From: Mustelus asterias
Lineage: Eukaryota
NCBI RefSeq assembly: GCF_964213995.1
Contig: NC_135825.1
Span: forward strand, 12,958,001 to 13,022,000
DNA: 64,000 nt
Direction: 5' to 3'
The position numbers and the translations under genes are program-made. Positions 8,084 through 35,100 of this stretch are shown piece by piece; position 1 is the stretch's first letter; every line of letters starts with the position of its first letter. Below the pieces are notes generated by a model that saw only the letters and a program-made list of their open reading frames with translations, searched no databases and was not told the DNA's origin.

Positions 8084-8123
8084 ATGAGGTTCACCGCGTT
8101 GCTGCTCCTCACTTTGATATCAA
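8084..8123 (+). CDS. Exon 1, leader peptide [13 protein letters not shown]
   Basis: ACCATG Kozak-like context, hydrophobic run, phase-1 donor A|GTAAG. Confidence 0.85.
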
Positions 8124-11100
8124 GTAAGATTTTCCAGTGCTATATGTGGAATGCCAGTTCACGTTTATGTAGAATCTTCATCTGAGGAAAATGGTTCAAA
8201 GTTGTTCACAGAGGAGTGAAGAAACACAGACTCTGGGCCAAAGGAGGGCAGGTGGAAAGGGTGAACCAAAAGCTCAGTCGAAGAGATGGGTTTTGAAGAG
8301 GGGGAGAGGGAGTTGGCGAGGAGAAGAGTTTTGACAACGGAGTCTCAGAATGTTGGATCTAATTGAAAACACGGCCATTAATGGTGGGGCACTTGGTTTC
8401 AGAGGAATGGAGAGTCCCCTCAGGGAGGGGGATAGTGGAATATCGGAGGACATTTCAGGAATGTGAACAGATTAGTATAATTTGCAAATTAACCTCGAAA
8501 CCCACATGGCGCTCACTCCTGCCACCCAGAGATAGCGACAGGAATAGAATCCATCATACCTTTCATACCTGAAGTAATAAAAAAAGAGAGGAAGATGGGG
8601 AATAGGACAGCCTGGATAGTTCTTCCTGAGAGTTCTGCAGTTTCAATGATGGGCAGTAGAGTTTCTTTCTGTGCTGTGAAATACGGTGACAGAGTGGTTA
8701 GCACTGCTGCCTCACAGTGCCAGGGACTTGGGTTCGATTCACAGCTCGGGTCACTGCCTGTGCGGAGTCTGCACGTTCTCCCCGTGTCTGTGGGTTTCCT
8801 CCGGGTGCTCCGGTTTCCTCCCACAGTTTGAAAGACGCGCTGGTTAGATGCATTGGCCATGCTAAATTCTCCCTCAGGCACCTGAGTGTGGCGACTAGGG
8901 GATTTTCACAGTAACTTCATTGCAATGTCAATGTCAGCCTACTTGTGACACGAATAAATAAACTTTACTACTTTGCCCACATGGAAATCAAATATCTCGG
9001 GATACGGATTAAACCCATTACTTCCCAACACATTAAGCAAATATCACGTTGAAGAAATTCTTGCCTGCGCCCTCAACTATCCTCCCTGCCATCCTATCTG
9101 TTGAATAAGATAACACACCGTCATTTCTGACCAATTAACATCGCTTCATAATATATATTAACTTTACATTTTAGATATTGCGTTTCTGCTTCAAATGCGA
9201 TTAAAGAAACGTGGACAAAACTTCTGGGGACTAAAGGAGCCTCTATATTCATCGAGAATGTGGCTTCACATGACCCAGGTTTTTACCTTTGTAAAGTATT
9301 TATCAGGCTGGGAAGATGAACGAGATCCCAGCCCTGGTGCTGAGGTTCTATAATTGAGGCCATTACCTGATTCACTCCTGCTTGCGATAACACAAAGGAA
9401 GAAAGGACATTACTCGAAAAGCAGGATATATTGTTCCTTCTGGAAGAGTACAGGCTTGAAATCGACTGGCTTGGCCTCACCCCAGTGCTAGGCTGAGGGG
9501 CTGGCCTGCAGAACGTGCTTCTTTCTCTCGGTGAGTTGGTGTCGCATTCCTGTACCCCACATCCTACTGCAAAGGCAGCTGTCCCAGAACACATCCAGTC
9601 ACCAAATGCATCACAAAGGTGGCCGCTGTCACGATTGGCTCAATCCTGAAAGAGCAGGCCCAAAGTTTGTATGTACTTGGAATATAGTGTTCAATTCTGG
9701 TCGCCACACTACCAGAAGAATGTGGAGGCTTTGGAGAAGGTACAGAAAAGATTTACCAGGATGTTGCCTGGAATGGAGGGCATTAGCTCTGAGGAGAGGT
9801 TGGAGAAACTTGGTTTGTTCTCACTGGAGCGACGGAGGTTGAGGGGAGACCTGATAGAAGTCTACAAGATTATGAGAGGCATGGACAGAGTGGATAGTCA
9901 GAAGCTTTTTCCCAGGGTGGAAGAGTCAATTACTAGGGGGCAGAGGTTTAAGGTGCGAGGGGCAAGGGTTAAAGGAGATGTACGAGGCAGATGTTTTACA
10001 CAGAGAGTAGTGGGTGCCTGGAACTCGTTGCCGGGGGAGGTAGTGGAAGCGGATACGATAGTGAGTTTTAAGGGGTGTCTTGACAAGTACATGAATAGGA
10101 TGGGAATAGAGGGATATGGTCCCCGGAAGGGTGGGGGTTTTAGTTAAGTCGGGCAGCATAGTCGGTGCAGGCTTAGAGGGCCGAAGGACCTGTTCCTGTG
10201 CTGTAATTTNNNNNNNNNNNNNNNNNNNNNNNNNNNNNNNNNNNNNNNNNNNNNNNNNNNNNNNNNNNNNNNNNNNNNNNNNNNNNNNNNNNNNNNNNNN
10301 NNNNNNNNNNNNNNNNNNNNNNNNNNNNNNNNNNNNNNNNNNNNNNNNNNNNNNNNNNNNNNNNNNNNNNNNNNNNNNNNNNNNNNNNNNNNNNNNNNNN
10401 NNNNNNNNNNNNNNNNNNNNNNNNNNNNNNNNNNNNNNNNNNNNNNNNNNNNNNNNNNNNNNNNNNNNNNNNNNNNNNNNNNNNNNNNNNNNNNNNNNNN
10501 NNNNNNNNNNNNNNNNNNNNNNNNNNNNNNNNNNNNNNNNNNNNNNNNNNNNNNNNNNNNNNNNNNNNNNNNNNNNNNNNNNNNNNNNNNNNNNNNNNNN
10601 NNNNNNNNNNNNNNNNNNNNNNNNNNNNNNNNNNNNNNNNNNNNNNNNNNNNNNNNNNNNNNNNNNNNNNNNNNNNNNNNNNNNNNNNNNNNNNNNNNNN
10701 NNNNNNNNNNNNNNNNNNNNNNNNNNNNNNNNNNNNNNNNNNNNNNNNNNNNNNNNNNNNNNNNNNNNNNNNNNNNNNNNNNNNNNNNNNNNNNNNNNNN
10801 NNNNNNNNNNNNNNNNNNNNNNNNNNNNNNNNNNNNNNNNNNNNNNNNNNNNNNNNNNNNNNNNNNNNNNNNNNNNNNNNNNNNNNNNNNNNNNNNNNNN
10901 NNNNNNNNNNNNNNNNNNNNNNNNNNNNNNNNNNNNNNNCACACTCACACAAACATATGCACATGCACACACATGCACATACACACACACACTCACAGAC
11001 ACATGCACACACACATATACATAAACACATACACACACATACACACCCGTACGCACGCAAACTCACATACACACACACATAAATGCACTTTATACACACA

Positions 11101-14100
11101 CACATGCACATGCACGTACGCACACGCAGACACATGAACATACACTCACATGCACATGTGCACACACAGTCATACACACCCACTCACACACACACGCCCA
11201 CACACATATATACACACACATACACACACACAAACACATGCACGCACGCATGCACNNNNNNNNNNNNNNNNNNNNNNNNNNNNNNNNNNNNNNNNNNNNN
11301 NNNNNNNNNNNNNNNNNNNNNNNNNNNNNNNNNNNNNNNNNNNNNNNNNNNNNNNNNNNNNNNNNNNNNNNNNNNNNNNNNNNNNNNNNNNNNNNNNNNN
11401 NNNNNNNNNNNNNNNNNNNNNNNNNNNNNNNNNNNNNNNNNNNNNNNNNNNNNNNNNNNNNNNNNNNNNNNNNNNNNNNNNNNNNNNNNNNNNNNNNNNN
11501 NNNNNNNNNNNNNNNNNNNNNNNNNGCACTCATACNNNNNNNNNNNNNNNNNNNNNNNNNNNNNNNNNNNNNNNNNNNNNNNNNNNNNNNNNNNNNNNNN
11601 NNNNNNNNNNNNNNNNNNNNNNNNNNNNNNNNNNNNNNNNNNNNNNNNNNNNNNNNNNNNNNNNNNNNNNNNNNNNNNNNNNNTACAGACACACACACTC
11701 TCACTCCCAAGGACACACACCCACACAATCCCTCACACAGACATACACGCACACTCACTCATTCCCTCACACACAGACTCTCACTCTCTCTCACACACAC
11801 ACACACACTCTCTCTCTCACTCTCCCTCCCACAAAAACACTCTCCCTCTCTCACTCCCACACACACTCACTCACACATTTGGGGCTCTGCTCAACAAAGT
11901 CTCACCCCTGGGCCTTGTGGCCAGCTCTCCTCCCCAGGACCTCCTCAGCCTTGTCCCCGGGCCCAGTTTGGAGGTGCTGGAGTTGGGTTCCGTGCACTCT
12001 GACAGCAACACCCCACTGGTGGAAGGGCACGATGAGAGGTAGTTGTGGGAATCTTGGGATTTTAAATATGAATATTAATTATAAAAATGAGGAGTTACAT
12101 TAACCCTTTACTGCTCACTTGTTACATCTCTGCTGGAGTATTGGGTACTCCAAGTATGGGGATATAAAAAGGGGCGGCACGGTGGCACAGTGGTTCACAC
12201 TGCTGCCTCACAGCGCCAGGGACCTGGGTTCAATTCCTGGCTTGGGTCACTGTCTGTGTGCAGTCTGCATGTTCTCCCCGTGTCTGCATGGGTTTCCTCC
12301 GGGTGTTCCGGTTTCCTCCCACAGTCTGAAAGGCTTGCTGGTTATTTGCATCGGCCAGGCTAAATTCTCCCTCGGTGTACCCGAACAGGTGCCGGTGTGT
12401 GGCGACGAGGGGATTTTCACAGTAACTACATTGCAGTGTTAATGTAAGTCTACTTGTGACTAATAAATAAACTTTACTTTACAATTCTGGGCACCACACC
12501 GAAGGAAGGAGGCAAGGGCACAGAGTGGATTTACCAGGATGATGCCAGGGATGAGGGAGTTTAGTTATGTGAACAGATTGGAGAAACCGAGATTATTGTC
12601 CTTGGAACAGAGCAGATTAAAGGGAAATCTAATCAATGTATTGAAAATGAGGAAGGGTTTTAATACAGCAAGTGGAGAGAGCAATTATTTCCTCTCGCTG
12701 GTGGATTGGTCACCAGAGATCATAGATTTCAAATAGTTGGAATACAAACCAGTGGATAAATGAGGGGAAATTATTTCATGCAGAAGATTGTTATGATGCG
12801 GAATACACCACCTGGAATGGTGATGGAATGAGATTCCAAAGGAACTTTCGGAAGGCAGTTGGACATGTGTTTGGAGGGGATTAATGTGCAGGGTTGTGGG
12901 GGAAGCTGGGCCGTGGGATTCAATTGGACAATAAATTTCCAAAGAGCTGGCACAGACATGACAGGCCGAATGTCCTCCTTCTCTGCTTTAAGATTCTTGA
13001 TTCCAGTCCCACCTAGGACGGTGGCACGGTGGCACAGTGGTTAGCACTGCTGCTTCACAGCTCCAGGGACCTGGGTTCGATTCCCGGCTTGGGTCACTGT
13101 CTGTGTGGATTTTGCACAGTCCCCTCGTGTCTGCGTGGGTTTCCTCCGGGTGCTCTGGTTTCCTCCCACGGTCCAAAGATGTGCGGATTAGGTTGATTGG
13201 CCATGTTAAAATTGCCCCTTAGTGTCCTGAGATGCATAGGTGAGAGGGATTAGTGGGTACAATATGTAGGGATATGGGAGTGGGGTCTGGGTGGGATTGT
13301 GGTCGGTGCAGACTCGATGGGACAAATGGCCTCTTTCTGGACTGTAGGGTTTCTATGATTTCTATGACTTGTGTGTGTCCCCTTGTGAAGCACTGGCTAG
13401 CATTGGACCAAAAGGATTGTCTACAATTGGTCGTTGGGATATTTTCAGCTTTCTTAAAACGTTATGTTTCACCAACAGTTTTATGGACACAAACTGCCTC
13501 GATAGTGATGAAAGCTGCAGTGGGAGAAACCATCACTGTGGAATGTCCACAGGCAACACAGCAAAAACACCATGAAATCTGGTGGTGTAAGAAAACTTCA
13601 TATAATTATTGCAATCAGATATCGAGCATTGACGGAGCCAGAGTCTGGAATGGTTATGCAAGAACATCGATCGCTAATACCAATGGTAACATTTTTGTAA
13701 CCATACAACAACTTCAGAAGACAGATACAGGAACATACTGGTGTGGACCTCAACAACACAACATTCTCCGTCCTTTAGATGTTATAGTACTGGAGGTTTT
13801 CTCAGGTAAGAATATTTCAGAAGATTGATTATAGCTCTGATAATGTGATCTGGCTGCAATAACACAGGACAGCTGCTGTGTGCTGTGTGAACTCAGATTA
13901 ATAAAATATTATCACAACTCCTGATGTACAAGTAGTGACCTCCCATACTCCCATTTCTATCCTTTTCCATTAACCTATTTCCACATCCTTTCAATTTATA
14001 CTCTTACAAACCAAAAATCATATTCCGCCCAAGACTCCTTTATTGATTCTTTCATGCGATGTGAGTGTCTGGAACAGCATTTATTGCACATCCCGAATTA

Positions 14101-17100
14101 TCCTTGAACTGCCTTCTTGAATCACTGCAGCTCATGAAGTGTACGTACACCCACAGTGCTGTTAGGGAAGGAGTTCCAGGATTGAGCCAGTGACGGTGAA
14201 GGAACGGCGATATATTTCCCAGTCTGGATGGTGTGTGTTTTGGAGGGAAGCTTGTAAGTGGTGGTGTTCCCATGCACAGGTTTGGAAGGAGATTTAATTC
14301 ATTGCTTTGTGTTTCCAGAGTAACTTGTATTAGATCGAGGGTGACTCAATGTGGTTTGAATCAATAAAGGCTTTATTGCCAACAATATGGCATGCTTGCC
14401 TTCATCAGACTGGGCATCGAGTATAAAAGTTGGCAAATTATGTTACAATTGTCTCAAACGTTGGTTAGGCCACATTTGGAATGCTGTGTCCAATTCTGGT
14501 CACCACACCACCAGAAGGATGTGGAGGCTTTGGAGAGAGTGAGGAAAAGGTTTACCAGGATGTTGCCTGGTACAGAGGGTATTAGCTATGAGGAGAGATT
14601 GAATAAACTGGGATTGTTCTCCCTGGAAAGACGGAGGCTGAGGGACAACCAGGTAGAAGTTTATAAAATTATGAGAGGTATAGATAGGGTGAACAGTTGG
14701 AAGCTTTTTCCCAGGGCAGAAATGACAATTACAAGGGGGCACAATTCAAGATAACGGGGGAAAGGTTCAGTGGAGATGTGCGGGGGAAGTTTTTTACACA
14801 GAGGGTGGTGGGGGCCTGGAATGCACTGCCAGGTGAGGTGGTTGAGGCACATTTAAGATTTAGATCGATCGGCATAGGAACAAACGGGGAATAGAGGGAT
14901 ATAAGCGGCAGGTCGAGATAGGTCAACATGATCAGCACAGGCTTGGAGGGCCGAAGGGCCTGTTCCTGTGCTGTACTGTTCTTTGTTCCTCACAATAAGA
15001 ATATATATATATATACACACCAAGGTCAGACTGAATTACAATGCAAATCTACTACCCGGCTCCCTGGCTCCAACTGCAAGACATTCCTCAACCCGTGGTT
15101 CACACCCTCTTGCCGATTGGCTCAGCTTCCAGGCTTCAGAATCCACAGGGCCTGACCCAATCACATGGCCCTCTAAACACTCCCCCACCCCAATTAAAGG
15201 GCCACAATCCTTCCCCCTAAAATCCGAAATACAACTATGGAGGAATAAAGAACAGGATTAGTGTTAAAATGAAAAGAGTAACAGAAATGGAAAACTCATC
15301 GAAGGTTTAATCAGTCCAGAGAATTCCAGTCTCTGGACCTGAATGTTTGTACCGCACTCTCCACTGGTCCATTTGAGGCTGCGTGGGAAGGTGTTGACCT
15401 CACATGGTGAATGCCATTGGACTTGAGGAATTTTTGGTTTTCTTCCACAGTGAATGATGTGCCATTGTCCGACACAACCACTTCCGGAATGCCACGGATA
15501 GCAGAGAATTTCCTCAATTGATCAATGGTGTCCGTGGCTGTTGGGGACTTCATCAACTGCATATCCGACTACAACTAATATAAGAAACACATGACCCAGA
15601 AATGGCCCGGCAAAATCTATATGTAACTTCGACAAAGGTCGACCAGGCCATTCCCAAAGATGCAAATTCATCTGTGGTGGTGAAGCCCATTGAGCTTCAT
15701 AACTAGAGCATTGACGAACCATCCGTTCTGTTTCCCTGCCAATGCCTGGTGAAAACACATATGCCTGGGGCCTTCATTCTACTTTGACCTCGATGACAGT
15801 GGTGCAGTTCTTGTAACAGGAGTGAAAGTTAAAGTCATAAGTCGGCTTACATTCACACTGCAATGGAGTTACTGTGAAAATCCCCGAGTCGCCACAATCC
15901 GGCGCCCGTTCGGGTACACTGAGGGAGAATTTAGCGTGGCCAATTCACCTAAGCAGCACGTCTTTGAAGTGTGGGAGGAAACCGGAGCACCCGGAGGAAA
16001 CCCACACAGACACGGGAAGAACATGCAGACACGACACAGACAGTGACCCAAGCCGGGAATCAAACCCTGGTCCCTGGCGCTGCGACACAGCAGTGCTAAC
16101 CACTGTGCCACCATACCTTCCTGGAGTCATCTCCCCAGGGGTGGCACGAGAAACTCTCGCCACCCGCAGCAACACCCCATCTTCACAGGTTATCTCCATC
16201 CTTCTACTTTGGTAGGGTTTGAGCTACTCTGACTTATATCACCACCCTCGTATTACCATCTTCTTTACTTCTGACCATACCGGCTCTCTTTTTTCCACAG
16301 TTTTATATGTTTCACCGAGACTGGCAAGGTCTCTACCAGATGCAGAGCCAGTATAATCTCTTGAGGAACCGGTGGTGGTGCGACTGTTTGTGGCAAAGGC
16401 AACAGCTAATTGCATCAGCTCGTGATATCTGCGTTCCAGGGTGATGCTGAAACGTATAACTGTACGCTGCAAACAAAGGAGCCCATCTCTGCATCCTTAC
16501 AGAGGCAATTAGTGGCACCGGCTTCTCTAAATAGACCTAACAATGGCTTGTGGCCTGAAACTATTGTAAAATGTCGCCCATAAATGACCAGCAAGTTTTC
16601 CTCATCTCTCTGGGAGTATTTCTTTTCCACATTTGATCCTGTCTCTCTCTCACACACACACTCTCCCCCTCACTCTCTCTCATTCTCTCGCTCACAAACT
16701 TTCTCTCACTCACAAACTTTCTCTCACTCTCAATACCACACACACACACTCTGTCTCTTATTCTCTCTCGCAATCACATACGCACTCTACCTTTCTCTCA
16801 CTCTCTCTCACTCTCTCCACACACACACACACACACACACACACTCTCCCTCTCACTCTCCTCCAACCCCTCCACACACACATGCACACACTCTCTCTCT
16901 CTCTCTCTTACTTACTCTCTACCTCACACACACAATCTCTCTCACTCCCGCGCACACATACACACCCACACGCACACACACACACAAACAGCAGTCACCC
17001 TCTTCCACCCTCCATCCTGGCCTAGGACTTTGCTCAACAGAGTCTCACTCTTGGACCTTGTGGCCATCTCTCCTCCCCAGGGCCTCCTCACACTTGTCCC

Positions 17101-20100
17101 CGGGCCCAGTTTCGAGATGCTGGAGTTGGGTTCCGGTGCACTCTGTTAGCAACACCCCACTAGTGGAAGGGCAGGTTGAGAGGCAGTTGTGCGATTCTTG
17201 GGGATGGCACGGTGGCACAGTGGTTAGCACTGCTGCCTCACAGCACCAGGGACCTGGGTTCAAGTCCTGGCTTGGCTCACTGTCTGTGCAGAGTCTGCTA
17301 ATTCTCCCCATCTCTGTGTGGGTGTCCTCTGGGTGCTCAGGTTTCCTCCCACAGACCAAAAGACATGCTGGTTAGGTGCATTGGCCATGCTAAATTCTCC
17401 CTCAGTGCACCCAAGCAGGTGCCGGAGTGTGGCGACTAGGGGATTTTCACAGTAACTTGGTTGCAGTGTTAATATAAGCCTATCTTTGATAATAAAATAA
17501 ATAAATAAAATTGGAGTATTAATTAGGGAAATGAGGTGTTCCACTAAACCTTTACTAATCACTGATTAGGTCTCTGCTGGAGTACTGGGTTCAATTCTGG
17601 GCACCACACTCGAGGAAGGAGGTCAAGGCCCTGGCAAGGGCACAGAGCAGATTTACCAGGATGATGCCAAGGATGAGGGTGTTTGGTTATGTGAACAGAT
17701 TGGAGAAACTGGGATTATTGTTCTTGAAACAGAGAATATTAAAGGGAAACCTAATCAATGTATTGAAAATGAGGAAGGGATTTAAAAGGCAGTTGGACAT
17801 GTGTTTGGAGGGGACTAATGTGCAGGGTTGTGGGGGAAGCTGGGCCGTGGGATTCAATTGGACAATAAATTTCCAAAGAGCTGGCACAGTCATGATAGGC
17901 CGAATGTCCTCCATCTCTGCTTTAAGATTCTTGATTCCAGTGCCACCCAGGACTTGTGTGTGTCCCCTTGTGAAGCACTGGCTAGCATGGGACCAAAAGG
18001 ATTGTCTACAATTGGTTGTTGGGATATTTCCAGCTTTCTTAAAATGTTATGTTTCACCAACAGTTTTATGGACACAAACTGCCTCGATAGTGATGAAAGC
18101 TGCAGTGGGAGAAACCATCACTGTGGAATGTCCACAGGCAACACAGCAAAAACACCAAGAAATCTGGTGGTGTAAGATAACTTCAGAAACTCGTTGCAAT
18201 CATATACCGATCATTGACGGAGACAGAGTCTGGAATGTTGATGCAAGAACATCGATCACTAATACCAACGGTAACATTTCTCTAACCATACAACAACTTG
18301 AGGAGACAGACGCAGGAACATACTGGTGTGGATCTCGATATCAAAACACTCTCCATGCTTTAGATGTTGTAATACTGAAGGTTTTCTCAGGTAAGAATAT
18401 TTCAGAAGATTGATTATAGCTCTGATAATGTGATCTGGCTGCAATAACACAGGACAGCTGCTGTGTGCTGTGTGAACTCAGATTAATAAAATATTATCAC
18501 AACTCCTCATGTACAAGTAGTGACCTCCCATATTCCCATTTCTATCCATTTCCATTAACCTATTTCCACATCCTTTCCATTTATACTCTTACAAACCAAA
18601 AATCATATTCCGCCCAAGCCTCTTTTATTGATACTTTTATGAAAAGTAAGTGTCGAGAACTGCACTTACAGTCCATCCCTAATTATCCTTGAACTGCCTT
18701 CTTGAATCACTGCAGCTCACGAGGTGTACGTACACCCACAGTGCTGTTAGGGAGGAAGTTCCAGGATTGAGCCAGTGACAGTGAAGGAACGGCGATATAT
18801 TTCCCAGTCTCGATGGTGTGTGTTTTGGAGGGGAGCTTGTAAGTGGTGGTGTTCCCATGTACCTGCTTCCCTCCTCCTTCTAGGTGTTAGATGTTGCAGG
18901 TTTGGAAGGAGATTTAAATCATTGCTTTGTAATAGATCGAGGGCGACTCAATCTGGATTGAATGAATTAAGGCTTTTTTGCCAACAATAAGAATATACCT
19001 ATATATACATATACATGTGCAACAAGGTCAGACTGAATTACAATGCGAATCTACTACTCGGCTCCAACTGCAAAACGTTCCTTCATCCGTGTTTCGCACC
19101 CTCTTGCCAATTGGCTCAGCTTCCCACCTTGACAATCCACAGCGCCTGACCCAATCACATGGCCCTCTAAACACTCCCCCACCCCAATTAAAGGGCCACA
19201 ATCTTTCCCACTAAAATCCGAAATACAACTATGGAGGAATAAAGAACAGGCTCAGTGTTAAAGTGAAAAGAGTAACAGAAATGGAAAACTCATTAAAGGT
19301 TTAATCAGTCCAGAGGATTCCGGTCTCTGGCAGAGTGCCTCAGTTCAGTGGTTTGCTCTCCGAAGTTTAAAGGGCCAGACGGGACAGACAGACTCATCAA
19401 TCCAGGGTCTGGTGGCTCTTCAGCAGCTTCTGGTTCCTCAGTCTCCACAACCAGCGGTTGCTGCGCTCCCACATTCTCCACCAAAATCCCAGTAACCAAC
19501 CCCGGCAAAGTTCAACCAACTGCAGGGGGCACCTGTTGATCCTCTGCGTCCATCACTCTCTCCTCCTTCGATGGTCTACCTGTTTCCTGAGCTGACAGCT
19601 TTGTATCTCCACAACGTCGGAGACCGGTCCTGTTCTCTCCACAATTTTACCAGCCACCCAGGACGGGCCTGGTGTAAAATACCTGACCAAGACTGCACCC
19701 CCACTTGAAACACTCTGTTTCCTTTTCTTGAATCACAGTTTTCCTTCTGAAAGACTAACCTAGCCTGCACACTCCCTGGCGAATTTGGAAACATCATGTC
19801 CAGTTGTGTTCTGAACTCGCATCCCATCAGCAACTCTGCTGGAATAACCCCTGTGGTCACGTTTGGGGTGGGGTTATAAGACAACAAAAAACTGTCCATA
19901 CAAAAAGGAAGAGAACAGTTTACTTGTTTTATTATTGATGATTTGAATGTTTGTACCACACTCTCCACTGGTCCATTTGAGGCTGCGTGGGAAGGTGTTG
20001 ATCTCACATGGTGAATGCCATTGGGCTTGAGGAATTTTTGGAATTCTTCCACAGTGAATGATGTGCCATTGTCCGACACAACCACTTCCGGAATGCCATG

Positions 20101-23100
20101 GATAGCAGAGAATTTCCTCAATCCATCAATGGTGTCCGTGGCTGTTGGGGACTTCATCAACTGCATATCCAACTACAACTAACATATGGCCCAGAAATGG
20201 CCGGCAAAATCTATATGTAACTTCGACCAAGGTTGACCAGGTCATTCCCAATGGTGGTGAAGCCCATTGAGCTTCGTAACTATGGCATTGATGAACCATC
20301 CGTTCTGTTTCCCTGCCAATGCCTGGTGAAAACACATATACCTGGGGCCTTCATTCTACTTTGACCTCGATGAGAGTGGTGCAGTTCTTCTAACAGGAGT
20401 TAAAGTTAAAGTCACAAGTAGGCTCACATTCACACCAATGAAGTTACTGTGAAAATCTCCATGTCACCACAATCCGGCGCCTCTTCGGATACACTGAGGG
20501 ATAATTTAGCGTGGCCAATTCATCTAACCAGCATGTCTTTGGAGTGTGGGAGGAAACCAGAGCACCGAGAGGAAACCCAACAGACACGGGAAGAACATGC
20601 AGACACGACTCAGACAGTGATCCAAGCTGGGAATCAAACCTTGGTCCCTGGCGCTGCGACGCAGCTGTGCTAACCACTGTGCCACCATACCTTCCTGGAG
20701 TCATCTCCCCAGGGGTGGCACGAGAAACTCTCGCCACCCACAGCAACACCCCATCTTCACAGGTTATCTCCATCCTTCTACTTTGGTAGGGTTTGAGCTA
20801 CTCTGACTTATATCGCCACCCTCGTATTACCATCTTCTTTACTTCTGACCATACCGGCTCTCTTTTTTCCACAGTTTTATATGTTTCGCCGAGACTGGCA
20901 AGGTCTCTACCAGATGCAGAGCCAGTATAATCTCTTGAGGAACCGGTGGTGGTGCGACTGTTTGTGGCAAAGGCAACCGCTAATTGCGTCTGCTCGTGAT
21001 ATCTGCGTTCCAGGGTGATGCTGAAACGTATAACTGTACGCTGCAAACTAAGGAGCCCATCTCTGCATCCTTGCAGCGGCAATTAGTGGCACCGGCTTCT
21101 CTAAATAGACCTAACAATGGCTTGTGGCCTGAAACTATTGTAAAATGTCGCCCATAAATGACCAGCAAGTTTTCCTCATCTCTCTGGAAGGATGACACAC
21201 ACACTCTATCTCTCTCTTATTCTTTCTCCCAATTACACACACACTCTAACTTTCTCTCACTCACTCTCACTCTCACTCTCTCTATACACACACACACACA
21301 CACTCCTTCTCACTCTCTCCCCACCCCCCACACACTCATGCACACACTCTCTCTCTCTCTCTCTCACACGCTTACAGAACAAAGAGATCTAGGGGTACAT
21401 GTTCATAGCTCCTTGAAAGTGGAGTCACAGGTGGACAGAGTGGTGAAGAAGGCATTCGGCATGCTTGGTTTCATCAGTCAGAACATTGAATACAGGAGTT
21501 GGGACGTCTTGTTAAAGTTGTACAAGACATTGGTAAGGCCACACTTGGAATGCTGTGTGCAATTCTGGTCACCCGATTATAGAAAGGGTATTATTAAACT
21601 AGAAAGAGTGCAGAAAACTGCACTATAAGTGCAGTTCTCGACACTCACTTTTCATAAAAGTATCAATAAAAGAGGCTTGGGTGGAATATGATTTTTGGTT
21701 TGTAAGAGTATAAATGGAAGGGATTTGGAAATAGGTTAATGGAAAATGATAGAAATGGGAATATGGGAGGTCACTACTTGTACATGAGGAGTTGTGATAA
21801 TACTTTATTAATCTGAGTTCACACAGCACACAGCAGCTGTCCTGTGTTATTTTCTGGGATGCTACCGGGACTTAATGAATTGAGTTATAAGGAGAGGCTG
21901 AATAGACTGGGACTTTTTTCTCTGGAGCGTAGGAGGCTGAGGGGTGATCTTATAGAGGTCTATAAAATAATGAGGGGCATAGACAAGGTAGATAGTCAAT
22001 ATCTTTTCCCAAAGGTAGGGGAGTCTAAAACTAGAGGGCATAGGTTTAAGGTGAGAGGGGAGAGATACAAAAGTGTCCAGAGGGGCACTTTTTTCACACA
22101 GAGGGTGGTGAGTGTCTGGAACAAGCTGCCAGAGGTAGTAGTAGAGGCGGGTACAATTTTATCTTTTAAAAAGCATTTAGATAGTTACATGGGTACGATG
22201 GGTATAGAGGGATATGGGCCAAATGCGGGCAATTGGTATTAGTTTAGGGGATTTTTTTAAAAAGGGCGGCATGGACAAGTTGGGCTAAAGGGCCTGTTTC
22301 CATGCTGTAAACCTCTATGACTCTCCCTCTCACACACAAACACACACACAGTCGTCATTCTCTTCCACCCTCCATCCCAGCCTAGGGCTTTGCCCAACAG
22401 AGTCTCACTCCTGGGCCTTGTGGCCAACTCTCCTCCCCAGGCCTCCTCAAACTTGTCCGCAGGCCCAGTCTGGAGATGCTGGAGTTGGGTTCCGGTGCAT
22501 TCTGACAGCAACACCCCACTGGTGGAAGGGCAGGTTGAGAGGCAGTTGTGGGATTCTTGAGGACGGCACAGTGGCACAGTGGTTAGCCTCACAGCACCAG
22601 AGACCTGGGTTTGATTCCAGGCTTGGGTCACTGTCTACGTGGAGTTTGCACATTCACCCCGTGTCTGTTTGGGTTTTCTCCGGGTGTTCCGTTTTCCTCC
22701 CACAGACCGAAAGATGTGCTGGTTAGGTGCATTGGCTTTCTAGTTTAATAATATCCTTTCAATAATAGGGTGACCAGAATTGCACACAGTATTCCAAATG
22801 TGGCCTTACCAATGTTTTGGTAAGACTCCCCCATTCCCCAACCAACCTCCACCTTGAACAAATCTATCAGCAAAATCCAGCTTGTTGTTACCACTCGATA
22901 CCAGGAGGGTGATCCAGTCTGGAAAGTGCCTGCCTGGTTCAGCGAAGACAGATAAACTGCCTGTCTGAAGGTTTCTGCATTAAGTTAACTGTAAGACTTT
23001 AGAAGTGGCCTCTCTTATTAGCAAGCTTGCTGTGAGATGTTACCCTGGCCTTCTTGTGACATGTTAAAACCGACCTTCCTGTGACATGTTAAAAATGGCC

Positions 23101-26100: not shown

Positions 26101-29100
26101 TAGGGATTCTATGATTCTTTGAACAATTGGTCAATGCTGTTGTTCATGTTTTACACAAGGCTATCACCCTATTTCATCTCAATCTTGCAGCATATCCTTC
26201 TATTCTTTTCCCCCTCAGTAAGTTCCTCTCGATTCACCCGAAAAGTATCTACAATATTTGGCACCACTGCACCTTATGGTACAGGTAAACACAGAAACAT
26301 AGGAAATGGGAGCAAGAGTATTCCTTCAGCATACCTCAGATTCACTAAACAAAAACCAGCAATGTCCATAAGCTGGACATTTTTAAGACGTTCTGTGCAC
26401 CAATTTTAACCGAGTAAGTGTTTTTTTAAACTTACCTGGACAATTCTGCCTCGGCACTGTGTTCGCCGTCATGTAGCTCTCGACTAGTTACCGGCTTCAC
26501 TGCTTCATATTCCACTCTCTCCGCCACTCCAAGTGACCCTTACACCAGCCGACCCAGAGAGACATGAACCACCCGTGGCCTGAACCACCCGACCGCATTC
26601 CAGCAAGGTCTGAAATCCAGCAGGACTGGATTTGAGCGATTGCACCCAATTCCACATTGAACAAGTTCCACCTTCTAACAACTCTCTGGGGAAGGAGGTT
26701 AGAAACTTTCACTGATACTAATAGTAACCGTCAATAATAAAAATATATTGAAAGTTCATAGAATCGCTACAATGCAGATGGAGGCCATTCAGCCCACACT
26801 CACAACAATCCCACCCAGGCCCTATCCTCGTAACCCCACACATTTACCCTGCTAATTCCCCAACACCAAGGGGTAATTTAGCATGACCAATCAACCTTAA
26901 CCTACACATCTTTGTTGTGTAGGAGGAAACCAGAGCACCCAGAGGAAACCCACGCAGACACGGGGAGAATGTGCAACCTCCATGCAGACGGTGCCCCAAG
27001 CCAGGAATCGAATCCGGGTCCCTAGCACTGTGAGGCAGCAGTGCTAACCACCATGCCACTGTGCTGCACCTCACAGATTATTGTCCATCCGACACTATTA
27101 GCCCCCTGTGAAGCCCCCTCACAATCTACCTTCTCCTCAGCCTTTTCACAAGATTATATACGTTAGTTAATTTTATTGTTACCAAGAGGAAAGGAAATGA
27201 AGGAGTGTTCTGGTGTGGAACAGCAAAAATAAATGGTGGAAACCTTGTAAAGATAAGAGAATCGGACAGTTGCTGACGGTAAGATTCTATGTAAGATTAT
27301 TATAATTCAGTCGGTATTGAATCGAACTCGGAACGGAAACTTGGCCAATACCAGTGCTTGTGCTTCACATGAGGCCCATTCTAGTCACCCCTTATCTCAC
27401 TCTTTTAGCATCCCCTTTGGTTCATTTCCGTCTAAATGCCTTTATCTCGCTCCCCATTAAAAGCATCTATGACTTTTGCCACAACTTCTGCTTACGGTAG
27501 CAAGTTTCACATTTCACAGGTTCCACATTCTAACAATTCTGAGTAAAGAACTTTCTTCCTGAATTCCTCATCGGTTATTTTAGTAACCATTTTAGATTTT
27601 GGTTCTGTCATAATCATAGAATCACAGAATCCCTGCAGTGCTGAAGGAGGCCATTTGGCCCATCGAGTCTGCACCGAACACAGTCCCACCAAGGCCCTAT
27701 TCCCGTAACCCCTCTTTTTTATCCTGTTAACTCCCCTGACACTAATTTAGCATGGCCAATCAACCGAACCCGCACATATTTGGACTGTGGAAGGAAACCG
27801 GAGCGCCCGGAGGAAACCCATGCAGACACGGGGAGAATGTGCAAACACTACACAAACAGTGACTCGAGGCCGGGATCGAACCTGGGTACTTGGCGCTGTG
27901 AGGCAGCAGTGCTAACCACTGTGCCATGCAACCCCAGTGCATAAGTGGAAACAACTCTTATGTCTTATGATTTTTTTCCCCACCATGCATGGGATGTTGG
28001 TGCCTCTGAGGAGGCCAGCTCTAACTAAATTTGATTTGATTTGATATATCATTGTCACATGTATTACTATACAATGAAAAGCATTGCTTCCTGCATGCTA
28101 TACAGACAAGGCATACCGTTCAGAGATAAGGAAAGGAGAGAGTGCAGAATGTAATGTTACATTCATAGCTAAGGTGTAGAGAAAGATCAGCTGAGTGCAA
28201 GGTGGGCCCATTGTAGAGTCTGTTTGCAGCAGGGGAGCAGCTGTTCTTGAGTCGGTTGGTACATGTCCTCCGACTTTTGTATCTTTTTCCGACAGAAGAA
28301 GGTGGAAGAGAGTATGTCCTGGGTGCGTGGGGTTCTTGAAAGCTGGCTGCTTTTCTGAGGCAGCAGGAGGTGTAGACAGACTCAACGGATGGGAGGCTGG
28401 TTTGCGTGATGGACTGGGCTTCATTCATGACCCTTTGTCATTTTTTGCGGTCTTGGGTAGAGCAGGAGCCACACCAAGCTGTGATACAACCAGAAAGAAT
28501 GTTTTCTGTGGTGCATCTGTAAAAGTTGGCGAGAGTCGTAGTGGACATGCCAAATTTCCTTAGTCTTCTGAGAAAGTAGATCCTTTGGGGGGCTTTCTGA
28601 ACTATAGTGTTGTCATGGGAAGACCAGGACAGGTTGTTGGTGATCTGGATACCTAAAAGCTTGAAGCTCTTGACCATTTCTACTTCGTCCCCATTGATGT
28701 AGACAGGGGCATGTCCTCTACTACGCTTCCTGAAGTCAATGACAATCTCCTTCATTTTGTTGACATTGAGGAAGAGATTGTTGTTGTCACACCAGTTCAC
28801 CAGATTCTCTATCTCTTTCCTGTACTCCGTCTCATCATTATGTGAGATTCGACCCATTGGTGGTGATGTCATCAGCAAACATGAAAATTGAGTTGGAGTG
28901 GAATTTGTCCACACAGTCATAGGTGTATAAGGAGTATAAAAGGGTGTTAAGAACACAGCCTTGTTGGGCACCGGTGTTGAGGATGATCGTGGAGGAGGTG
29001 TTGTTGCCTATCCTTACTGATTGCGATCTGTGGGTTCGGAAGTCCAGGATCCAGTCCAAATGTGAACATTTGGTGGCAGGTCACTGCTGCAATCCATGTA

Positions 29101-32100
29101 GTGTTGGTGCTGTTTGGGAGAGAATCCCAGGATCCGAATCCAGTGAGAGTGAGATAACAACGATGCATTTCTAAACCTGGGTAGAATATTACACATACTT
29201 ATTTGATCAGGCAGCACGGTGGCACAGTGGTCAGCACTGCTGCTTCACAGCGCCAGGGACCCAGGTTCAATTCCGGCCTTGGGTCAGTGCCAGTGTGGAG
29301 TTTGCACATTCTCCCCATGTCTATGTGGGTTTCCCCCGGGGGGTTCGGTTTCCTCCCACAGTCCAAAGGTGTACAGCAAAGGTTGATTGGCCATGCTAAA
29401 TTGCCCCTTAGTGTCAGAGGAATTAGCATGGTAAATACATGGGGATAGGGCCTGGGTGGGATTGTGGTTGGTGCAGACTCAATGGGCCGAATGGCCTCTT
29501 GCTTCACTGTTGGGAATCTATGACTCTAATCCATCTATGAGCTTTCGTGAAATCATTGCTTGCGGTAGCACGTAGAATTCAGTAAATGTAGATAAATTGG
29601 CATCTTAATCTGGACATAAAAACATTTGCAAGTCATCACTTCGATTTCGAATGAGCAACAAGTGAGGCCACGATTATTTCTCTTTGTTTCAGCCTCACTT
29701 TATGATGAAAGAAGATAACCTCATTCTGTGTTATGGGGCAGAAACATATATTGAAGAAGCTCTGTGGCAAATCCACCCTCATTTTGAGTTTGACCACATT
29801 GGACAGTGAGGCATCAAGTAATCTTTCCCTGTACAAGGGAAGAAAAGATTAAGGGTGCAGTCACGGCTCGGCGCTTTGGATGGATTCTTACCAGCGCCAT
29901 TAGCATTGCCAACTTTGATTAGGGTGGCACGATGGCACAATAGATAGCACTGCTACCTCACAGCACCAGGGACCCAGGTTCAATTCCAGCTTTGGGTGTC
30001 TGTCTGTGTGGAGTCTGCACGTTCTCCCCATACCTGCGTGGGTTTCCTCCGGGTGCTCCGGTTTCCACCCACAGTCCAAAGATGTGCTGGTTAGGTGGGT
30101 TAACCATGCTAAATTGATCCTCAGTGTCCAGGAATTTGTAGGTTTAGTGAATTGGCCATGGTAAATTTACAGGGTTACGGGAATAGGACAGTGGGGGGGT
30201 GAGGGGGGGTGTTAGGGGCATAAGGCTAGTAAGATGCTCTTTCAGAGAGTCAGTGCAGGCTCAATGAGCCGAATGGCCTCCTTCTGCACTGTAGGAAGTT
30301 TATAGAAATATACTTCTCCAACCATGCTCCAACCATCAGTCACCCAACACATGCATCTCGTGACATACCACCTTCCTACGCGAATTGGAAAACATAAAGG
30401 CTCATTTTTTGAGTGGATGATGCATGATTGTCAGTGAAATAGCATTTCCACTGCCCCCCTCCGTCACCCCCACCATTTTCAATATTTTTATAACCAATAA
30501 AGAGAAGTGTTCGAAGAAAATGACCAAAAGAAATCTTTTTTAATGTCCGGATGATTTTTCTCCAGTGTCCTGGAGATTCCAGATCAATCCAGGAGGGTTG
30601 GTGACCCTAACTCCCTGGAGGTGATGTTACAGGTGGAGGCAAGGGGAATTTCAGACAGTTAAGTGTCGGGACAGTTCTCCACTGTTGTCCCACCTCTGGG
30701 CCAGTATCCCATGGGCAGACTACCATGGGAACTGTCAGCCTACTCCCTGGAGACAGGCAGTCAACAAAGCCAATTAAGGGTCTACTCAGCAGCCATTTTC
30801 AGCAGTCACTGGAATTTTCCTGGTATCAAGCCCCAACCTCCACTGTTCCCCACTCCCCCCCTCCCCCACCCATCCCTTCCCATCCCCCCCCACCCCACTC
30901 CTCCCACTGGGGCCAGAGCCAGCTCTTTGAAGACAACCTCCCAGCAGATGGAAGGCCATTGGACCCTCTTCTCAATCCCCCTATTCATGGAGCCACACAA
31001 ACTAAAGAGCCACAACCACAATAACTCCTGCCAGGGAGATCCCCCTTCAATCTGATAGCCCAAATGGATGTGGGCCTTCTTCAATTGCAAATTCTCTACA
31101 GGCCTCTGAGGTCACCTCCATTTTGATAAAACCCCCTCAGTCCCCTAGCTGCCTGTTTGACCATAAACTAAATCTATCTCTTCCTCTGCTCCCTTTGCAC
31201 AAGATTATGCGACAATTCAAGACAAGGAAATCCGTTCAACCAGCGTCCATCCGTCCATCCATCCATCCATCCATCCATCTATCCATCCATCCATCTATCC
31301 ATCCAGCCAAATCTATTCATCCATCCATAGCCATCCAGAATTTGACCAGTTGGCTCAAGGAAACTGAAAAGGCGGCACGGTAGCACAGTGGTTAGCACTG
31401 CTGCTTCACAGCTCCAGGGACCCGGGTTCAATTCCCGGCCTTGGGTCACTGTCAGTGTGGTGTTTGCACATTCTCCTCGTGTCTGCGTGGGTTTCCTCCG
31501 GGTGCTCTGGTTTCCTCCCACAGTCCAAAGATGTGGGCAGGTTAGGTTGATTGGCCCTTAGTGTCCTGAGATGAGTAGGTTAGAGGAATCAGCGGGTAAA
31601 TGTGCAGGGATATGGGGGTAGGGCCTGGGTGGGATTGTGGTCGGTGCAGACCCGATGGGCCGAATGGCCTCTTTCTGCACTGGAGGGTTTCTATGATTCT
31701 ATGAAACAGCCAATGATCAGAATGTTTAAAATATGCCCCCTTCGCCACAGAACTGCGCCCGCCTGCCCCTCCCTGCCCCATAACACCCACATTTGCTTTC
31801 TTAAATACTGTGTGATGAGAATAAAAGTATGTTATTATTGGGAATTATTATCAGTTATTGACTGACTTATTCATTCATGTTTGCTTGGAAAAACAGGGAA
31901 TTCAGAGGTACCCAGCAATGGCCAAAGGTGAGATTTCAATAATTGTCTCGATATAATTTCTAATCATTCTAATTAAACTCATATTGACTAGATAGTTCTG
32001 CTCTCTTCATAATATTGCTGTGCAATCCGATATCTTTAAAACTACCACAATCCCCACAACTGCCTGTATGGCCCTATACTTTTCCTCATATAATTCCTAT

Positions 32101-35100
32101 TGATATCTTCCTGTTTAATACAAGCATCAATTTCAGAGAGCAAGGTTTCCACAGGCTCTGCCAGTGATCGTACAGTTGGCGATGATCCGTGGCCTCTATC
32201 ATTCAAGGCTATGGGCCAAGTGCTGGTAAACGGGATTAGGTGGGAGGTCAGGTGTTTCCCGCATGCCAGTGCAGACTCGATGGGCTGAAGGGCCTCTTCT
32301 GCACTGTATGATGCTATGATTCTTTGAGCTATGCATTACCACTTTCTTCTGATTTCCCTCCCCACACCTCAGTATTCATTCACTGCATGTGGGAATCACT
32401 GGCAAAGCCAGAATTTGTTGCCCATCCCTAATTGCCCTTGACATGGTGGTTTCTTGTCATCATGTGCCACAGTAGTCCACAAGGTGTAAGTATTCCCGTC
32501 GTACTATTAGAAAGGCAGTTCCTGGATTTTGACCCAGTGACGATGAAGGAAACTTGATGCATTTCCGAGTCACACTAGTGTGGGCATTGGAAGGGAAGCT
32601 ACAGGAGGTGGTGTTTCCCCGCGCCTGCCATCCTTGTCCTTCTAGCTGGTAGAGGTGGCGAGTTTGGAGCATGCTGTTGAGGATACCTTGGTGGATTGCT
32701 TCAGTGTATTGTCAACTATGAGAGATAATCTCACCAGAATATAGCTCATCTTTCAATCAAGGGATATTACATTAAAAACCAGAAGTCACGTGGCACGGTG
32801 GGTAGTGTCCGGTTCAAGACGCACCCAAGGATTTGATGGCCGAGGAAGGTGTGTTTACAATGTGACCACACAGGTTGAGTATTGGGCGGCACAGTGGCAC
32901 AGTGGTTAGCACAGCTGCCTCACAGCGCCAGGGACCCGAGTTCAATTCCGGCCTTGGGTGACTATCTGTGTGGAGTTTGCGCATTCTCCCCGTGTCTGCG
33001 TGGGTTTCCTCCAGGTGCTCCGGTTTCCCCCCACACTCCAAAGATGTGCAGGTTAGGTTGATTGGCCATGCTAAATTGCCCTTTAGTGTCAGGGAGATTA
33101 GGACTGTAAATATGTGGGGTTACGGAGATGGGACCTGGGTGGGATTGCTGTCAATGCAGACTCAATGGGCCAAATGGCCTCCTTCTGCACTGCAGGGATC
33201 CTATGAGTATTAACCTGTAAAATTCTTCCAACACACACCAATGGCAGACGGTTAGCGCGGGAGAGATTCCTGGTTAACCATGCTTGATGGAGTGGTGCCT
33301 CCAAGCTGTAAGCCTCTGGTGACGGGCTAGCGAACTGTTCCAGGGAAGACGTCACCATGGAGACAGATGGAAGGCTGCCTCGTGCACCACTAGTTATAGG
33401 AAGACAAACAACATTAAAAACCAGTTCCTCCATTTAGTTCACAATCCACTATATTTTCCTTTGTTTTATCATGTGCACAAAGTCTTAATTCAATCTATTC
33501 CGCTTGAATCCTTTAGCAAAATCTCTTCACTGGAATGGTACATCATCCTCACTGTTGTTCCAGGACTGTTAATCTTACTACTGCTGGTTTTATTCATATT
33601 CAGAAAGAAAATGCAAAAATCAGCCAGAGATCAGGGTGAGTAGCCATGGAGACATTTTCTCTGCAATAAATATGCAACATGGATTGCCCAGTGGAATAGC
33701 ACAATAATACATTGTTGATATAAAATTGAAAGAACTACTTTTCAATGAGAAACAGGAAGAGCTAAATTTTCCCAGTTTTATGGAGGTGAGTTAAGTAAGT
33801 GAGACTGGGAAAAAAGATACAAAATGGCACTTCAGGTCAGCTACCAGAATCATTCCCATCCCCGACTGCTCTTGCCCAAGCTGAGTCAATGTGGCAAAGG
33901 CCGCCCATACAGCGGCAGCGGCTAACCAATTAGGTGCATTAATGGGACAATTGTGGGGGGGACAGGTGATGGCTTTGTTGGGATCTTCACAATAGCAGAT
34001 GAGAGCCCTACTGAGGCCCAAGCCTAACAGGCAACTGGAGGTAGCCTCATTGCGATAGGGCTTGAGGCAGTTAATGCCTCCACTTGATCAAATCTGCTGG
34101 TGGTCACCAGCAACATCTGCAGCCACAGGCCACCCTGTGGAGGGTTCCCTCACTATTGTGATGACCACATAACTGTGGGCCGGTGCAATTTTCAATTTTT
34201 TCCAATGCTGCAGAGAGCATCTCCATTTTGAGGTGCCCTCGTGATCTCCTGCCTGAAGGGCCAACTCTCTTGGTGGAGTTGCTGTCGAGACACAGCTGTT
34301 GGGCCTCCTGTTTAGGCTCCAGCTTCCAATAGTCTGCCCTCTGTCCTTAACTGAACCGGGATTCCGGTGCTGGCTGCCTCTCTGAAAATCACAATCCACC
34401 AAGGCCTCTTCCACATTCTGAGCCAAAATTGAGGCGAACAACAAGGTCATGACCCAACCAAGAAAGTTCATCCCTCGGACCATCCAGCCCCTCCAACCCA
34501 ACCAATTTTGGTCAATTCTTTCACTGCATGTTTGACATATAAACAATATGGAGGGAATAAAAGGTGAGAGCTACGATGAATGAAGCAAGCTTTCCATCCC
34601 AACACCTGGGCAGGAGGCGTACTCCACTGGAACCTGCCATCCCGTGCAACATAGGTGGCTCAGTGGTTAGCGGTTAGCACTGCTGCCTCAAAGCACCAAG
34701 CACCTGGGTTCGATTCCTGACTTGGGTCACCATCTGTGCGGAGTTTGCACATTCTCCCCGTGTCTGCATGGGTTTCCTCCGGCTGACAGTAATAAATGGA
34801 TTTTAAACATTAATAATATTGCATCAGATTCTGAGTCATTCCACAGCACAGTGGCACAGTTTGCAGTAAACCTCTAAAGCATGGTCAAAGTCCTTGACAC
34901 GCAATTCTTTCACTTCCTCACGCTATTCCTCCCCTTCTCTTCTGAAGCCACTTCTCCTTTAGCACCTTTAGGTAAAAGATAAAGTTTATTTATTAGTGTC
35001 ACAGGTCGGCTTACATTAACACTGCAATGAAGTTACTGTGAAAATCCACTTGTCGCCACACTCCGGCGCCTGTTCGGGAACACTGAGGGAGAATTTAGCA

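Follow-up and report, generated by a model that had tools for sequence, protein, structure and literature searches.

The window analysed here is a stretch of 64,000 nucleotides (nt) from the houndshark Mustelus asterias (assembly GCF_964213995.1, contig NC_135825.1, positions 12,958,001 to 13,022,000 of the forward strand; positions below are counted from its first letter). It harbors an eight-exon gene for a predicted membrane receptor, in which the exon for a V-set immunoglobulin (Ig) domain exists in two tandem copies, exons A and B. These two copies differ almost solely by amino-acid replacements, at a rate above that of the non-coding DNA duplicated with them, and the replacements gather on one side of the modelled domain. 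Two protein models of NCBI, P0151 (482 aa, isoform X1) and P0152 (432 aa, isoform X2), contain the exact translations of exons A and B in tandem, and all of their exons were placed in the window by tblastn. When exon A was compared, without a profile, with 1.8 billion representatives, the search led to P0001, a protein of 390 residues with three matching stretches, and P0001 as the query led to three proteins that NCBI names 'polymeric immunoglobulin receptor-like [Mustelus asterias]'. A comparison of the 108-residue translation of exon A with proteins of 59-189 aa gave no candidate, a result that is uninformative on longer kin. The spliced proteins are automatic models of NCBI. The exons of the gene are as follows.

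8084-8123, forward strand: exon 1, with the start codon and the signal peptide; residues 1-13 of P0151 (tblastn, 100%); the last nt belongs to a split codon (phase 1) and is followed by GT
13479-13805, forward strand: exon A (domain D1a), V-set Ig domain, 327 nt, phase 1/1; Pfam V-set PF07686, E = 3.9e-11; residues 15-122 of P0151; AlphaFold predicted local distance difference test score (pLDDT) 90.2
18064-18390, forward strand: exon B (domain D1b), tandem duplicate of exon A, 327 nt, phase 1/1; Pfam V-set PF07686, E = 6.9e-14; residues 124-231 of P0151
25402-25728, forward strand: D2 exon, a second V-set type, 327 nt, phase 1/1, about 29% identical to D1; placed by tblastn, Pfam V-set (E = 1.2e-10) and exon boundaries
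31897-31927, forward strand: short stalk exon; tblastn 100%, exon boundaries
33517-33635, forward strand: transmembrane exon, with a hydrophobic span that lacks a charged residue; tblastn, exon boundaries and the P0151 sequence
40312-40358, forward strand: cytoplasmic exon; tblastn 100%, exon boundaries
43523-43753, forward strand: last coding exon, with a tail that has two motifs of the immunoreceptor tyrosine-based inhibitory motif (ITIM) type and one TxYxxL motif, and the stop codon; tblastn, exon boundaries and the P0151 sequence

Exons A and B each follow an AG and precede a GTAAG, each gives a 108-residue translation, and their frames are open, with no stop and no frameshift, between identical splice sites. 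All three V exons (A, B and D2) share exactly the same length and phase, despite the low identity between D1 and D2. In the automatic model the predicted order of the protein is leader, D1a, D1b, D2, transmembrane span and ITIM tail, and by its sequence the product is predicted to be a receptor of the CD300/pIgR/TREM kind, set in the membrane as a type I protein and ending in an ITIM-bearing tail. The earlier sequence-only reading of this DNA had spoken of an inhibitory receptor, and the uncharged transmembrane span and ITIM-type tail of P0151 agree with that wording. It needs correction in one respect: the annotated models put both exons together, as D1a and D1b of one protein, and not as alternatives. 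The second model, P0152, is without the stalk and transmembrane exons (31897-31927 and 33517-33635), D2 being joined to the cytoplasmic exons; such a protein would keep the ITIM tail but would not span the membrane, which would be odd if the model is real.

Exons A and B lie in two tandem units. The units, an inverted piece further downstream, and the parts into which exon A and its surroundings can be divided when compared with exon B are listed here.

12482-16822, forward strand: duplication unit A in its aligned extent, broken up by private insertions, among them a short interspersed element (about 13020-13365) and the stretch at about 14388-14980; blastn of unit against unit, and alignments
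17592-21369, forward strand: duplication unit B, offset by about 4.6 kb, with private insertions of its own (e.g. about 19331-19943); blastn of unit against unit, and alignments
21619-21851, reverse strand: inverted partial copy of the intron piece 3' of the D1 exons; 96.1% identical to 18443-18675 (after exon B) and 91.6% to 13858-14084 (after exon A)
13461-13572, forward strand: identical tract of 112 nt (the last 18 intron nt and the first 94 exon nt), the second longest identical run in the unit
13573-13793, forward strand: hypervariable core of exon A, which holds all of the differences from exon B (counterpart in exon B, 18158-18378)
13794-13922, forward strand: identical tract of 129 nt (12 nt at the end of the exon and 117 nt of the intron that follows, donor site included), the longest identical run in the unit

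Over five aligned blocks, the non-coding DNA of the two units differs at 160 of 2632 aligned nt (6.1%), and the non-coding DNA nearest to the exons (113 nt upstream and 225 nt downstream) differs at 8 of 338 nt (2.4%). The junction between units A and B is in uninterrupted sequence with no N; runs of N are found at 10210-11683, upstream of unit A. Because the inverted piece is closer to the intron that follows exon B than to the one that follows exon A, it appears to be derived from the intron of unit B. In the pre-mRNA it could pair with either intron, forming a stem of about 230 bp within the intron between exon B and D2, or a stem that loops out exon B.

The codon-by-codon comparison of exons A and B confirmed the counts that had been made by hand: 32 of the 327 nt differ, 30 of these differences being replacements and two being silent (codon 68, AAT/AAC; codon 82, GAT/GAC), and 27 of the 108 residues are changed. 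The first 94 nt of the exons and the first 117 nt of the introns behind them were likewise found to be free of mismatches, as had been stated. All 32 differences fall between exon nt 95 and 315, and given that number, the probability of finding none in the first 94 nt is 1e-5. They are spread over the three codon positions as 15:10:7, which by our own arithmetic is not significantly off an even split. The four cysteines (Cys22, Cys36, Cys44 and Cys88), Trp34/35 and Tyr86 are kept in both exons, and the residue strings that had been quoted for the C-C' region and the FG loop (for the latter, PQQHNILRP against SRYQNTLHA) are present in the translations. Many replacements were said to alter charge; counted by eye, 10 of the 27 change the formal charge.

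The replacement excess holds up against two yardsticks. By the method of Nei and Gojobori (NG86), with 70.5 silent (S) and 253.5 replacement (N) sites, the replacement rate (dN) is 0.129 and the silent rate (dS) is 0.029, so that the ratio proposed earlier as a check is 4.45, with a two-sided Fisher p = 0.024. A pairwise maximum-likelihood (ML) codon model of the Goldman-Yang type, written by ourselves and run under three codon-frequency settings, gave a ratio (omega) of 5.9-6.1 with a transition bias (kappa) of 2.7-2.9, and the likelihood-ratio test (LRT) against omega = 1 gave p = 0.0025-0.0042. The second yardstick, the non-coding DNA of the same duplication, is independent of the two silent differences. 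Replacements occur at 30 of 253 sites (11.8%). This is more than in the non-coding DNA as a whole (160/2632; p = 0.0012) and more than in the DNA adjoining the exons (8/338; p = 4e-6). Silent differences, at 2.8%, do not depart significantly from the 6.1% of non-coding DNA (p = 0.44). The exon core, with 32 differences in 221 nt (14.5%), is more diverged than non-coding DNA (p = 1.7e-5), and is the most diverged 221-nt window of the aligned unit; the next non-overlapping windows have 25, 24 and 22 mismatches. We also considered multi-nucleotide events or micro-tracts as a cause of the skew, and rejected them, as gaps of at most 3 nt make up 13 of the 31 between differences inside the core, where 11.7 would be expected (P = 0.35), with no extra clustering.

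The changes were mapped onto a structural model of exon A, as the sequence-only reading had suggested. The model was made by AlphaFold on an alignment of 35 sequences (pLDDT as listed above) and has nine strands, from which all strand and loop limits used here are taken; a single-sequence fold of P0151 reached a pLDDT of only 40.9 and was discarded. The CC' segment (residues 37-47) and complementarity-determining region 3 (CDR3; residues 89-99) together have 12 of their 22 residues changed, against 15 of 86 elsewhere (p = 8e-4). On the side formed by the model strands C, C', C'', F and G (residues 33-59 and 84-107), 20 of 51 residues are changed, against 7 of 57 elsewhere (p = 0.0017). None of the 13 columns that are invariant in 12 outgroup D1 domains is changed, and the changed columns are the more variable ones in these outgroups (entropy 1.67 vs 1.04, p = 2e-4). 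Each of the four cysteines is kept in at least 90% of the 35 aligned homologues. In mouse CD300lf, according to a structural account (PMC6166816), the phosphocholine head group and the P domain of murine norovirus bind in a cleft that is flanked by CDR3 and the CC' loop and has the Cys36-Cys44 disulfide as its floor. Exons A and B of the shark have cysteines at the same numbers, 36 and 44, a putative second pair set around the CC' loop in addition to the canonical pair of strands B and F. By homology with CD300lf, the changed CC'/CDR3 face is likely to be the ligand-binding face of the shark domains.

The family to which the gene belongs was surveyed at the protein level. When 17 homologues of sharks and rays were cut into domains, two D1-type domains were found in only two genes, both of Mustelus, and the other 15 were composed of D1 and D2. 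The second Mustelus gene encodes P0001 and lies outside the window on the same Mustelus asterias record, of 58.7 Mb; P0001 has the layout D1-D1-D2, then a hydrophobic span in which there is an Arg, then a short tail, and its D2 is 89.9% identical to that of the gene in the window. Because the Arg-bearing span and the short tail of P0001 stand opposite the ITIM tail of P0151, P0001 looks like a counterpart of activating layout, and the two genes look like members of a paired inhibitory and activating receptor family. In all seven of the within-species paralogue pairs (one of Mustelus, three of Scyliorhinus canicula and three of S. torazame), D1 is more diverged than D2, with identities of 70.6-80.7% for D1 and 89.9-99.1% for D2. 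The greater divergence of D1 is thus family-wide.

We favor, with a probability of about 0.6, a tandem duplication of D1 followed by positive diversifying selection on the CC'/CDR3 face of both exons. The duplication, of about 4.6 kb, copied the membrane-distal V-domain exon, so that the predicted protein has D1a, D1b and D2 where other sharks have D1 and D2. Since then, amino-acid changes have been fixed in both D1 exons at more than the neutral pace. They lie on the side of strands C, C', C'', F and G, most of all in the CC' segment and in CDR3. Constraint or gene conversion has meanwhile kept the core residues, the initial third of the exon and the surroundings of the splice sites identical. 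The pattern of substitutions suggests that positive diversifying selection favored two different binding specificities, in which case both domains would be produced and each may bind a ligand of its own. The selecting agent may have been shifting ligands, or pathogens that exploited the inhibitory receptor, with the activating-type paralogue alongside; the role of pathogens is proposed by analogy with known paired receptors.

Several points weigh against this explanation. The comparison is a single pairwise one with only two silent differences, so the error on omega is wide, and the Fisher test on the raw counts gives no more than the p-value quoted above. The case was chosen by eye as an extreme one, which is an ascertainment bias. 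The neutral yardstick is soft, because the non-coding divergence is uneven, from 2.4% beside the exon to as many as 11 mismatches per 50-nt bin, with 6.1% overall. The claim of diversifying selection made in the sequence-only reading is supported in part: the excess of replacements is real, lies above the non-coding rate and is enriched in CC' and CDR3. The changes are not enriched in loops over strands: under the DSSP assignment of the model, 13 of 58 strand residues and 14 of 50 other residues are changed (p = 0.51), and CDR1 has one change only. Finally, the four D1 domains of Mustelus are about equidistant (72.6-79.2% identity) and share residue states in a mosaic, and some of the differences between exons A and B may be non-independent, because gene conversion may have moved states between the D1 copies.

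This last point leads to a different explanation, which we regard as rather unlikely: that one or both cores came in by gene conversion, the donors being D1 copies of the receptor cluster that are older and diverged, with the flanks keeping the signature of a young duplication, so that the skew of 30:2 would be inherited from a family-wide diversification of D1 and would not have been made between exons A and B. It draws on the sharp boundaries, with the identical runs of 112 nt and 129 nt set around a core of 14.5% divergence. It also draws on the protein identities, exons A and B (75.0%) being no closer to each other than either is to the two D1 domains of P0001, V1 and V2 (73.1-79.2%), which are 72.6% identical to each other. 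Over their first 30 residues, the four D1 domains of Mustelus show a single change. Beyond these residues, the shared states form a mosaic; exon A, for instance, agrees with V1 at residues 41-43, and exon B agrees with V1 at residues 38, 83 and 98 and with V2 at residues 53, 58, 103 and 105. Polarising the 27 changes with V1, V2 and the 12 outgroups gave this mosaic and no clean tree, with no orthology of A to V1 or of B to V2, and the derived-looking changes are spread over both copies. However, an old tract should have brought silent differences with it, and the core has two, its silent rate being not above that of non-coding DNA. Neither D1 of P0001 is close to either core, all pairs being about 63-71% identical over residues 31-108 (our own arithmetic); the runs of shared states at the 27 variable sites are only one to three sites long; and there is no other D1-type copy in the window. 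Such an import would also shift selection from the exon pair to the family without abolishing it. The mosaic as a whole fits two processes that do not exclude each other: the 5' third of the exon and the intron next to it being homogenised or constrained, and the core undergoing exchange or recurrent change within a limited set of residues.

Relaxed constraint combined with chance, in which a redundant exon drifts neutrally and 30:2 is a sampling extreme among the many duplicated exons that could be scanned, is very unlikely. The ratio does hang on two silent sites, its Fisher p-value would fail heavy multiple testing, and the hits at the three codon positions are not significantly uneven. Plain relaxation is rejected because the drift of a redundant exon cannot push replacement above the neutral rate; here, the replacement rate is about twice that of non-coding DNA, and the LRT rejects omega = 1. 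The invariant columns, as well as the Cys, Trp and Tyr landmarks, are untouched, the exons have neither stop nor frameshift and keep identical splice sites, and private changes are found in both copies and not in one only. That two divergent alleles of one D1 exon were falsely stacked in tandem by the assembly, as the N runs a few hundred bases upstream of unit A might suggest, is likewise very unlikely, because the units differ by 6.1% and by several private insertions of hundreds of bases, their junction is free of N, a third, inverted piece from unit B lies further downstream, and P0001, a second gene of the same assembly, shares the layout with two D1 domains.

Compatible with selection on both exons is a further idea, which we hold to be unlikely: that exons A and B are not always used together, so that forms with leader-A-D2, leader-B-D2 and leader-A-B-D2 might be made. 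Such an alternative use of the heads is possible because the exons are of equal phase, with identical splice surroundings and an inverted repeat in the intron; the skipping of either exon would stay in frame, and both isoform models of NCBI carry both exons. If it were true, one germline, non-rearranging gene for an inhibitory receptor would have a choice of binding heads, with selection keeping the heads different and gene conversion keeping the framework third and the introns identical.

Three further features of the window were recorded in and around the introns of the gene. On the forward strand at 9152-9316, between the leader and exon A and just upstream of the assembly gaps at 10210-11683, the sequence is open over 55 residues and includes a Tyr-x-Cys motif like that of the F strand in Ig domains; it is possibly another Ig fossil. 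On the same strand at 27169-27258, 1.4 kb 3' of the D2 exon, a short open stretch resembles the F-G end of D2 (57.6% identity over 33 residues to residues 302-334 of P0151, with a 3-residue gap), and it is probably the fossil of a duplicated D2 exon. The intron that separates the transmembrane exon from the cytoplasmic exon after it contains a minisatellite (37121-40072) with 98.5 copies of a 30-nt unit and 90% matches, both strands of which are open in frames for about 1000 codons.

Among solved structures, the nearest by sequence are pIgR domains, CD300a, CLM-1/6 and NKp44, the best match being pIgR 7jg2_E (E = 7.7e-27, summed over five domains). A Foldseek search with the model of exon A returned CD300c, CD300a, TREM2, NKp44, TLT-1, pIgR D1/D2 and CD300lf, with template-modelling scores of 0.69-0.80. 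The likeness to CD300 (CD300a/CD300c and CD300lf) is seen in the V-set fold with the extra Cys36-Cys44 pair, the top structural matches being 9z0m, 2q87 and 6e47. It is seen as well in the pairing of an ITIM-tailed inhibitory member with a paralogue that has a charged transmembrane residue and a short tail, the part taken by P0001 in the shark. The likeness further includes the position of the cleft for ligand and virus in CD300lf (PMC6166816), which lies where the shark exons differ most, and the ectodomain gene conversion that is reported for the paired primate members CD300A and CD300C (PMC12447643). The difference is that CD300 has one V domain and the shark gene has three (D1a, D1b and D2), and the sequence identity is only about 22-26%.

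The pIgR group offers a second comparison. The PIGRL genes of zebrafish reportedly have inhibitory and activating tail types (Kortum et al. 2014). Teleost pIgR and zebrafish PIGRL have ectodomains of two V domains, like the D1 + D2 proteins of other sharks. The extra tandem D1 exon of the present gene was seen, among the 17 shark and ray homologues, in the two Mustelus genes only. The pIgR-like genes of zebrafish are described as a multigene family linked to phospholipids (PMC9321927, PMC4384117), and V-exon duplication is described as the way in which pIgR gained domains, of which teleosts have two and mammals five (PMC4384117). Tetrapod pIgR resembles the shark gene in the mode of domain gain described in that source (PMC4384117), as well as in being its best sequence match among solved structures. 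A true pIgR, however, is a transcytosis receptor without ITIMs, whereas P0151 ends in a tail with a pair of ITIM-type motifs plus one TxYxxL motif. Such a tail speaks against the product being a true pIgR that works in transcytosis, and the NCBI name 'polymeric immunoglobulin receptor-like' is a label of similarity only.

Replacement-biased divergence in the binding region of duplicated immune receptor domains is a textbook principle. In the MHC (major histocompatibility complex) peptide-binding region, and in KIR, LILR, Ly49 and SIRP, replacements exceed silent changes in the binding region, and the framework is conserved or homogenised. The shark units differ from all of these in being exons of one gene, predicted to lie in one polypeptide, and not alleles or separate genes. 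We found no description of this receptor family in sharks in the literature searched, a search whose coverage did not extend to subscription journals. The shark case falls within a known kind of system, and is not surprising to a comparative immunologist.

In short, the gene provides a compact and well-delimited example from a cartilaginous fish, in which an innate receptor gains a binding domain and then diversifies it. It suggests that paired receptors of the CD300/pIgR-like kind, under selection driven by ligands or pathogens, may be common to sharks and mammals. Exons A and B represent two natural variants of one domain, so that their ligand specificities can be directly compared.

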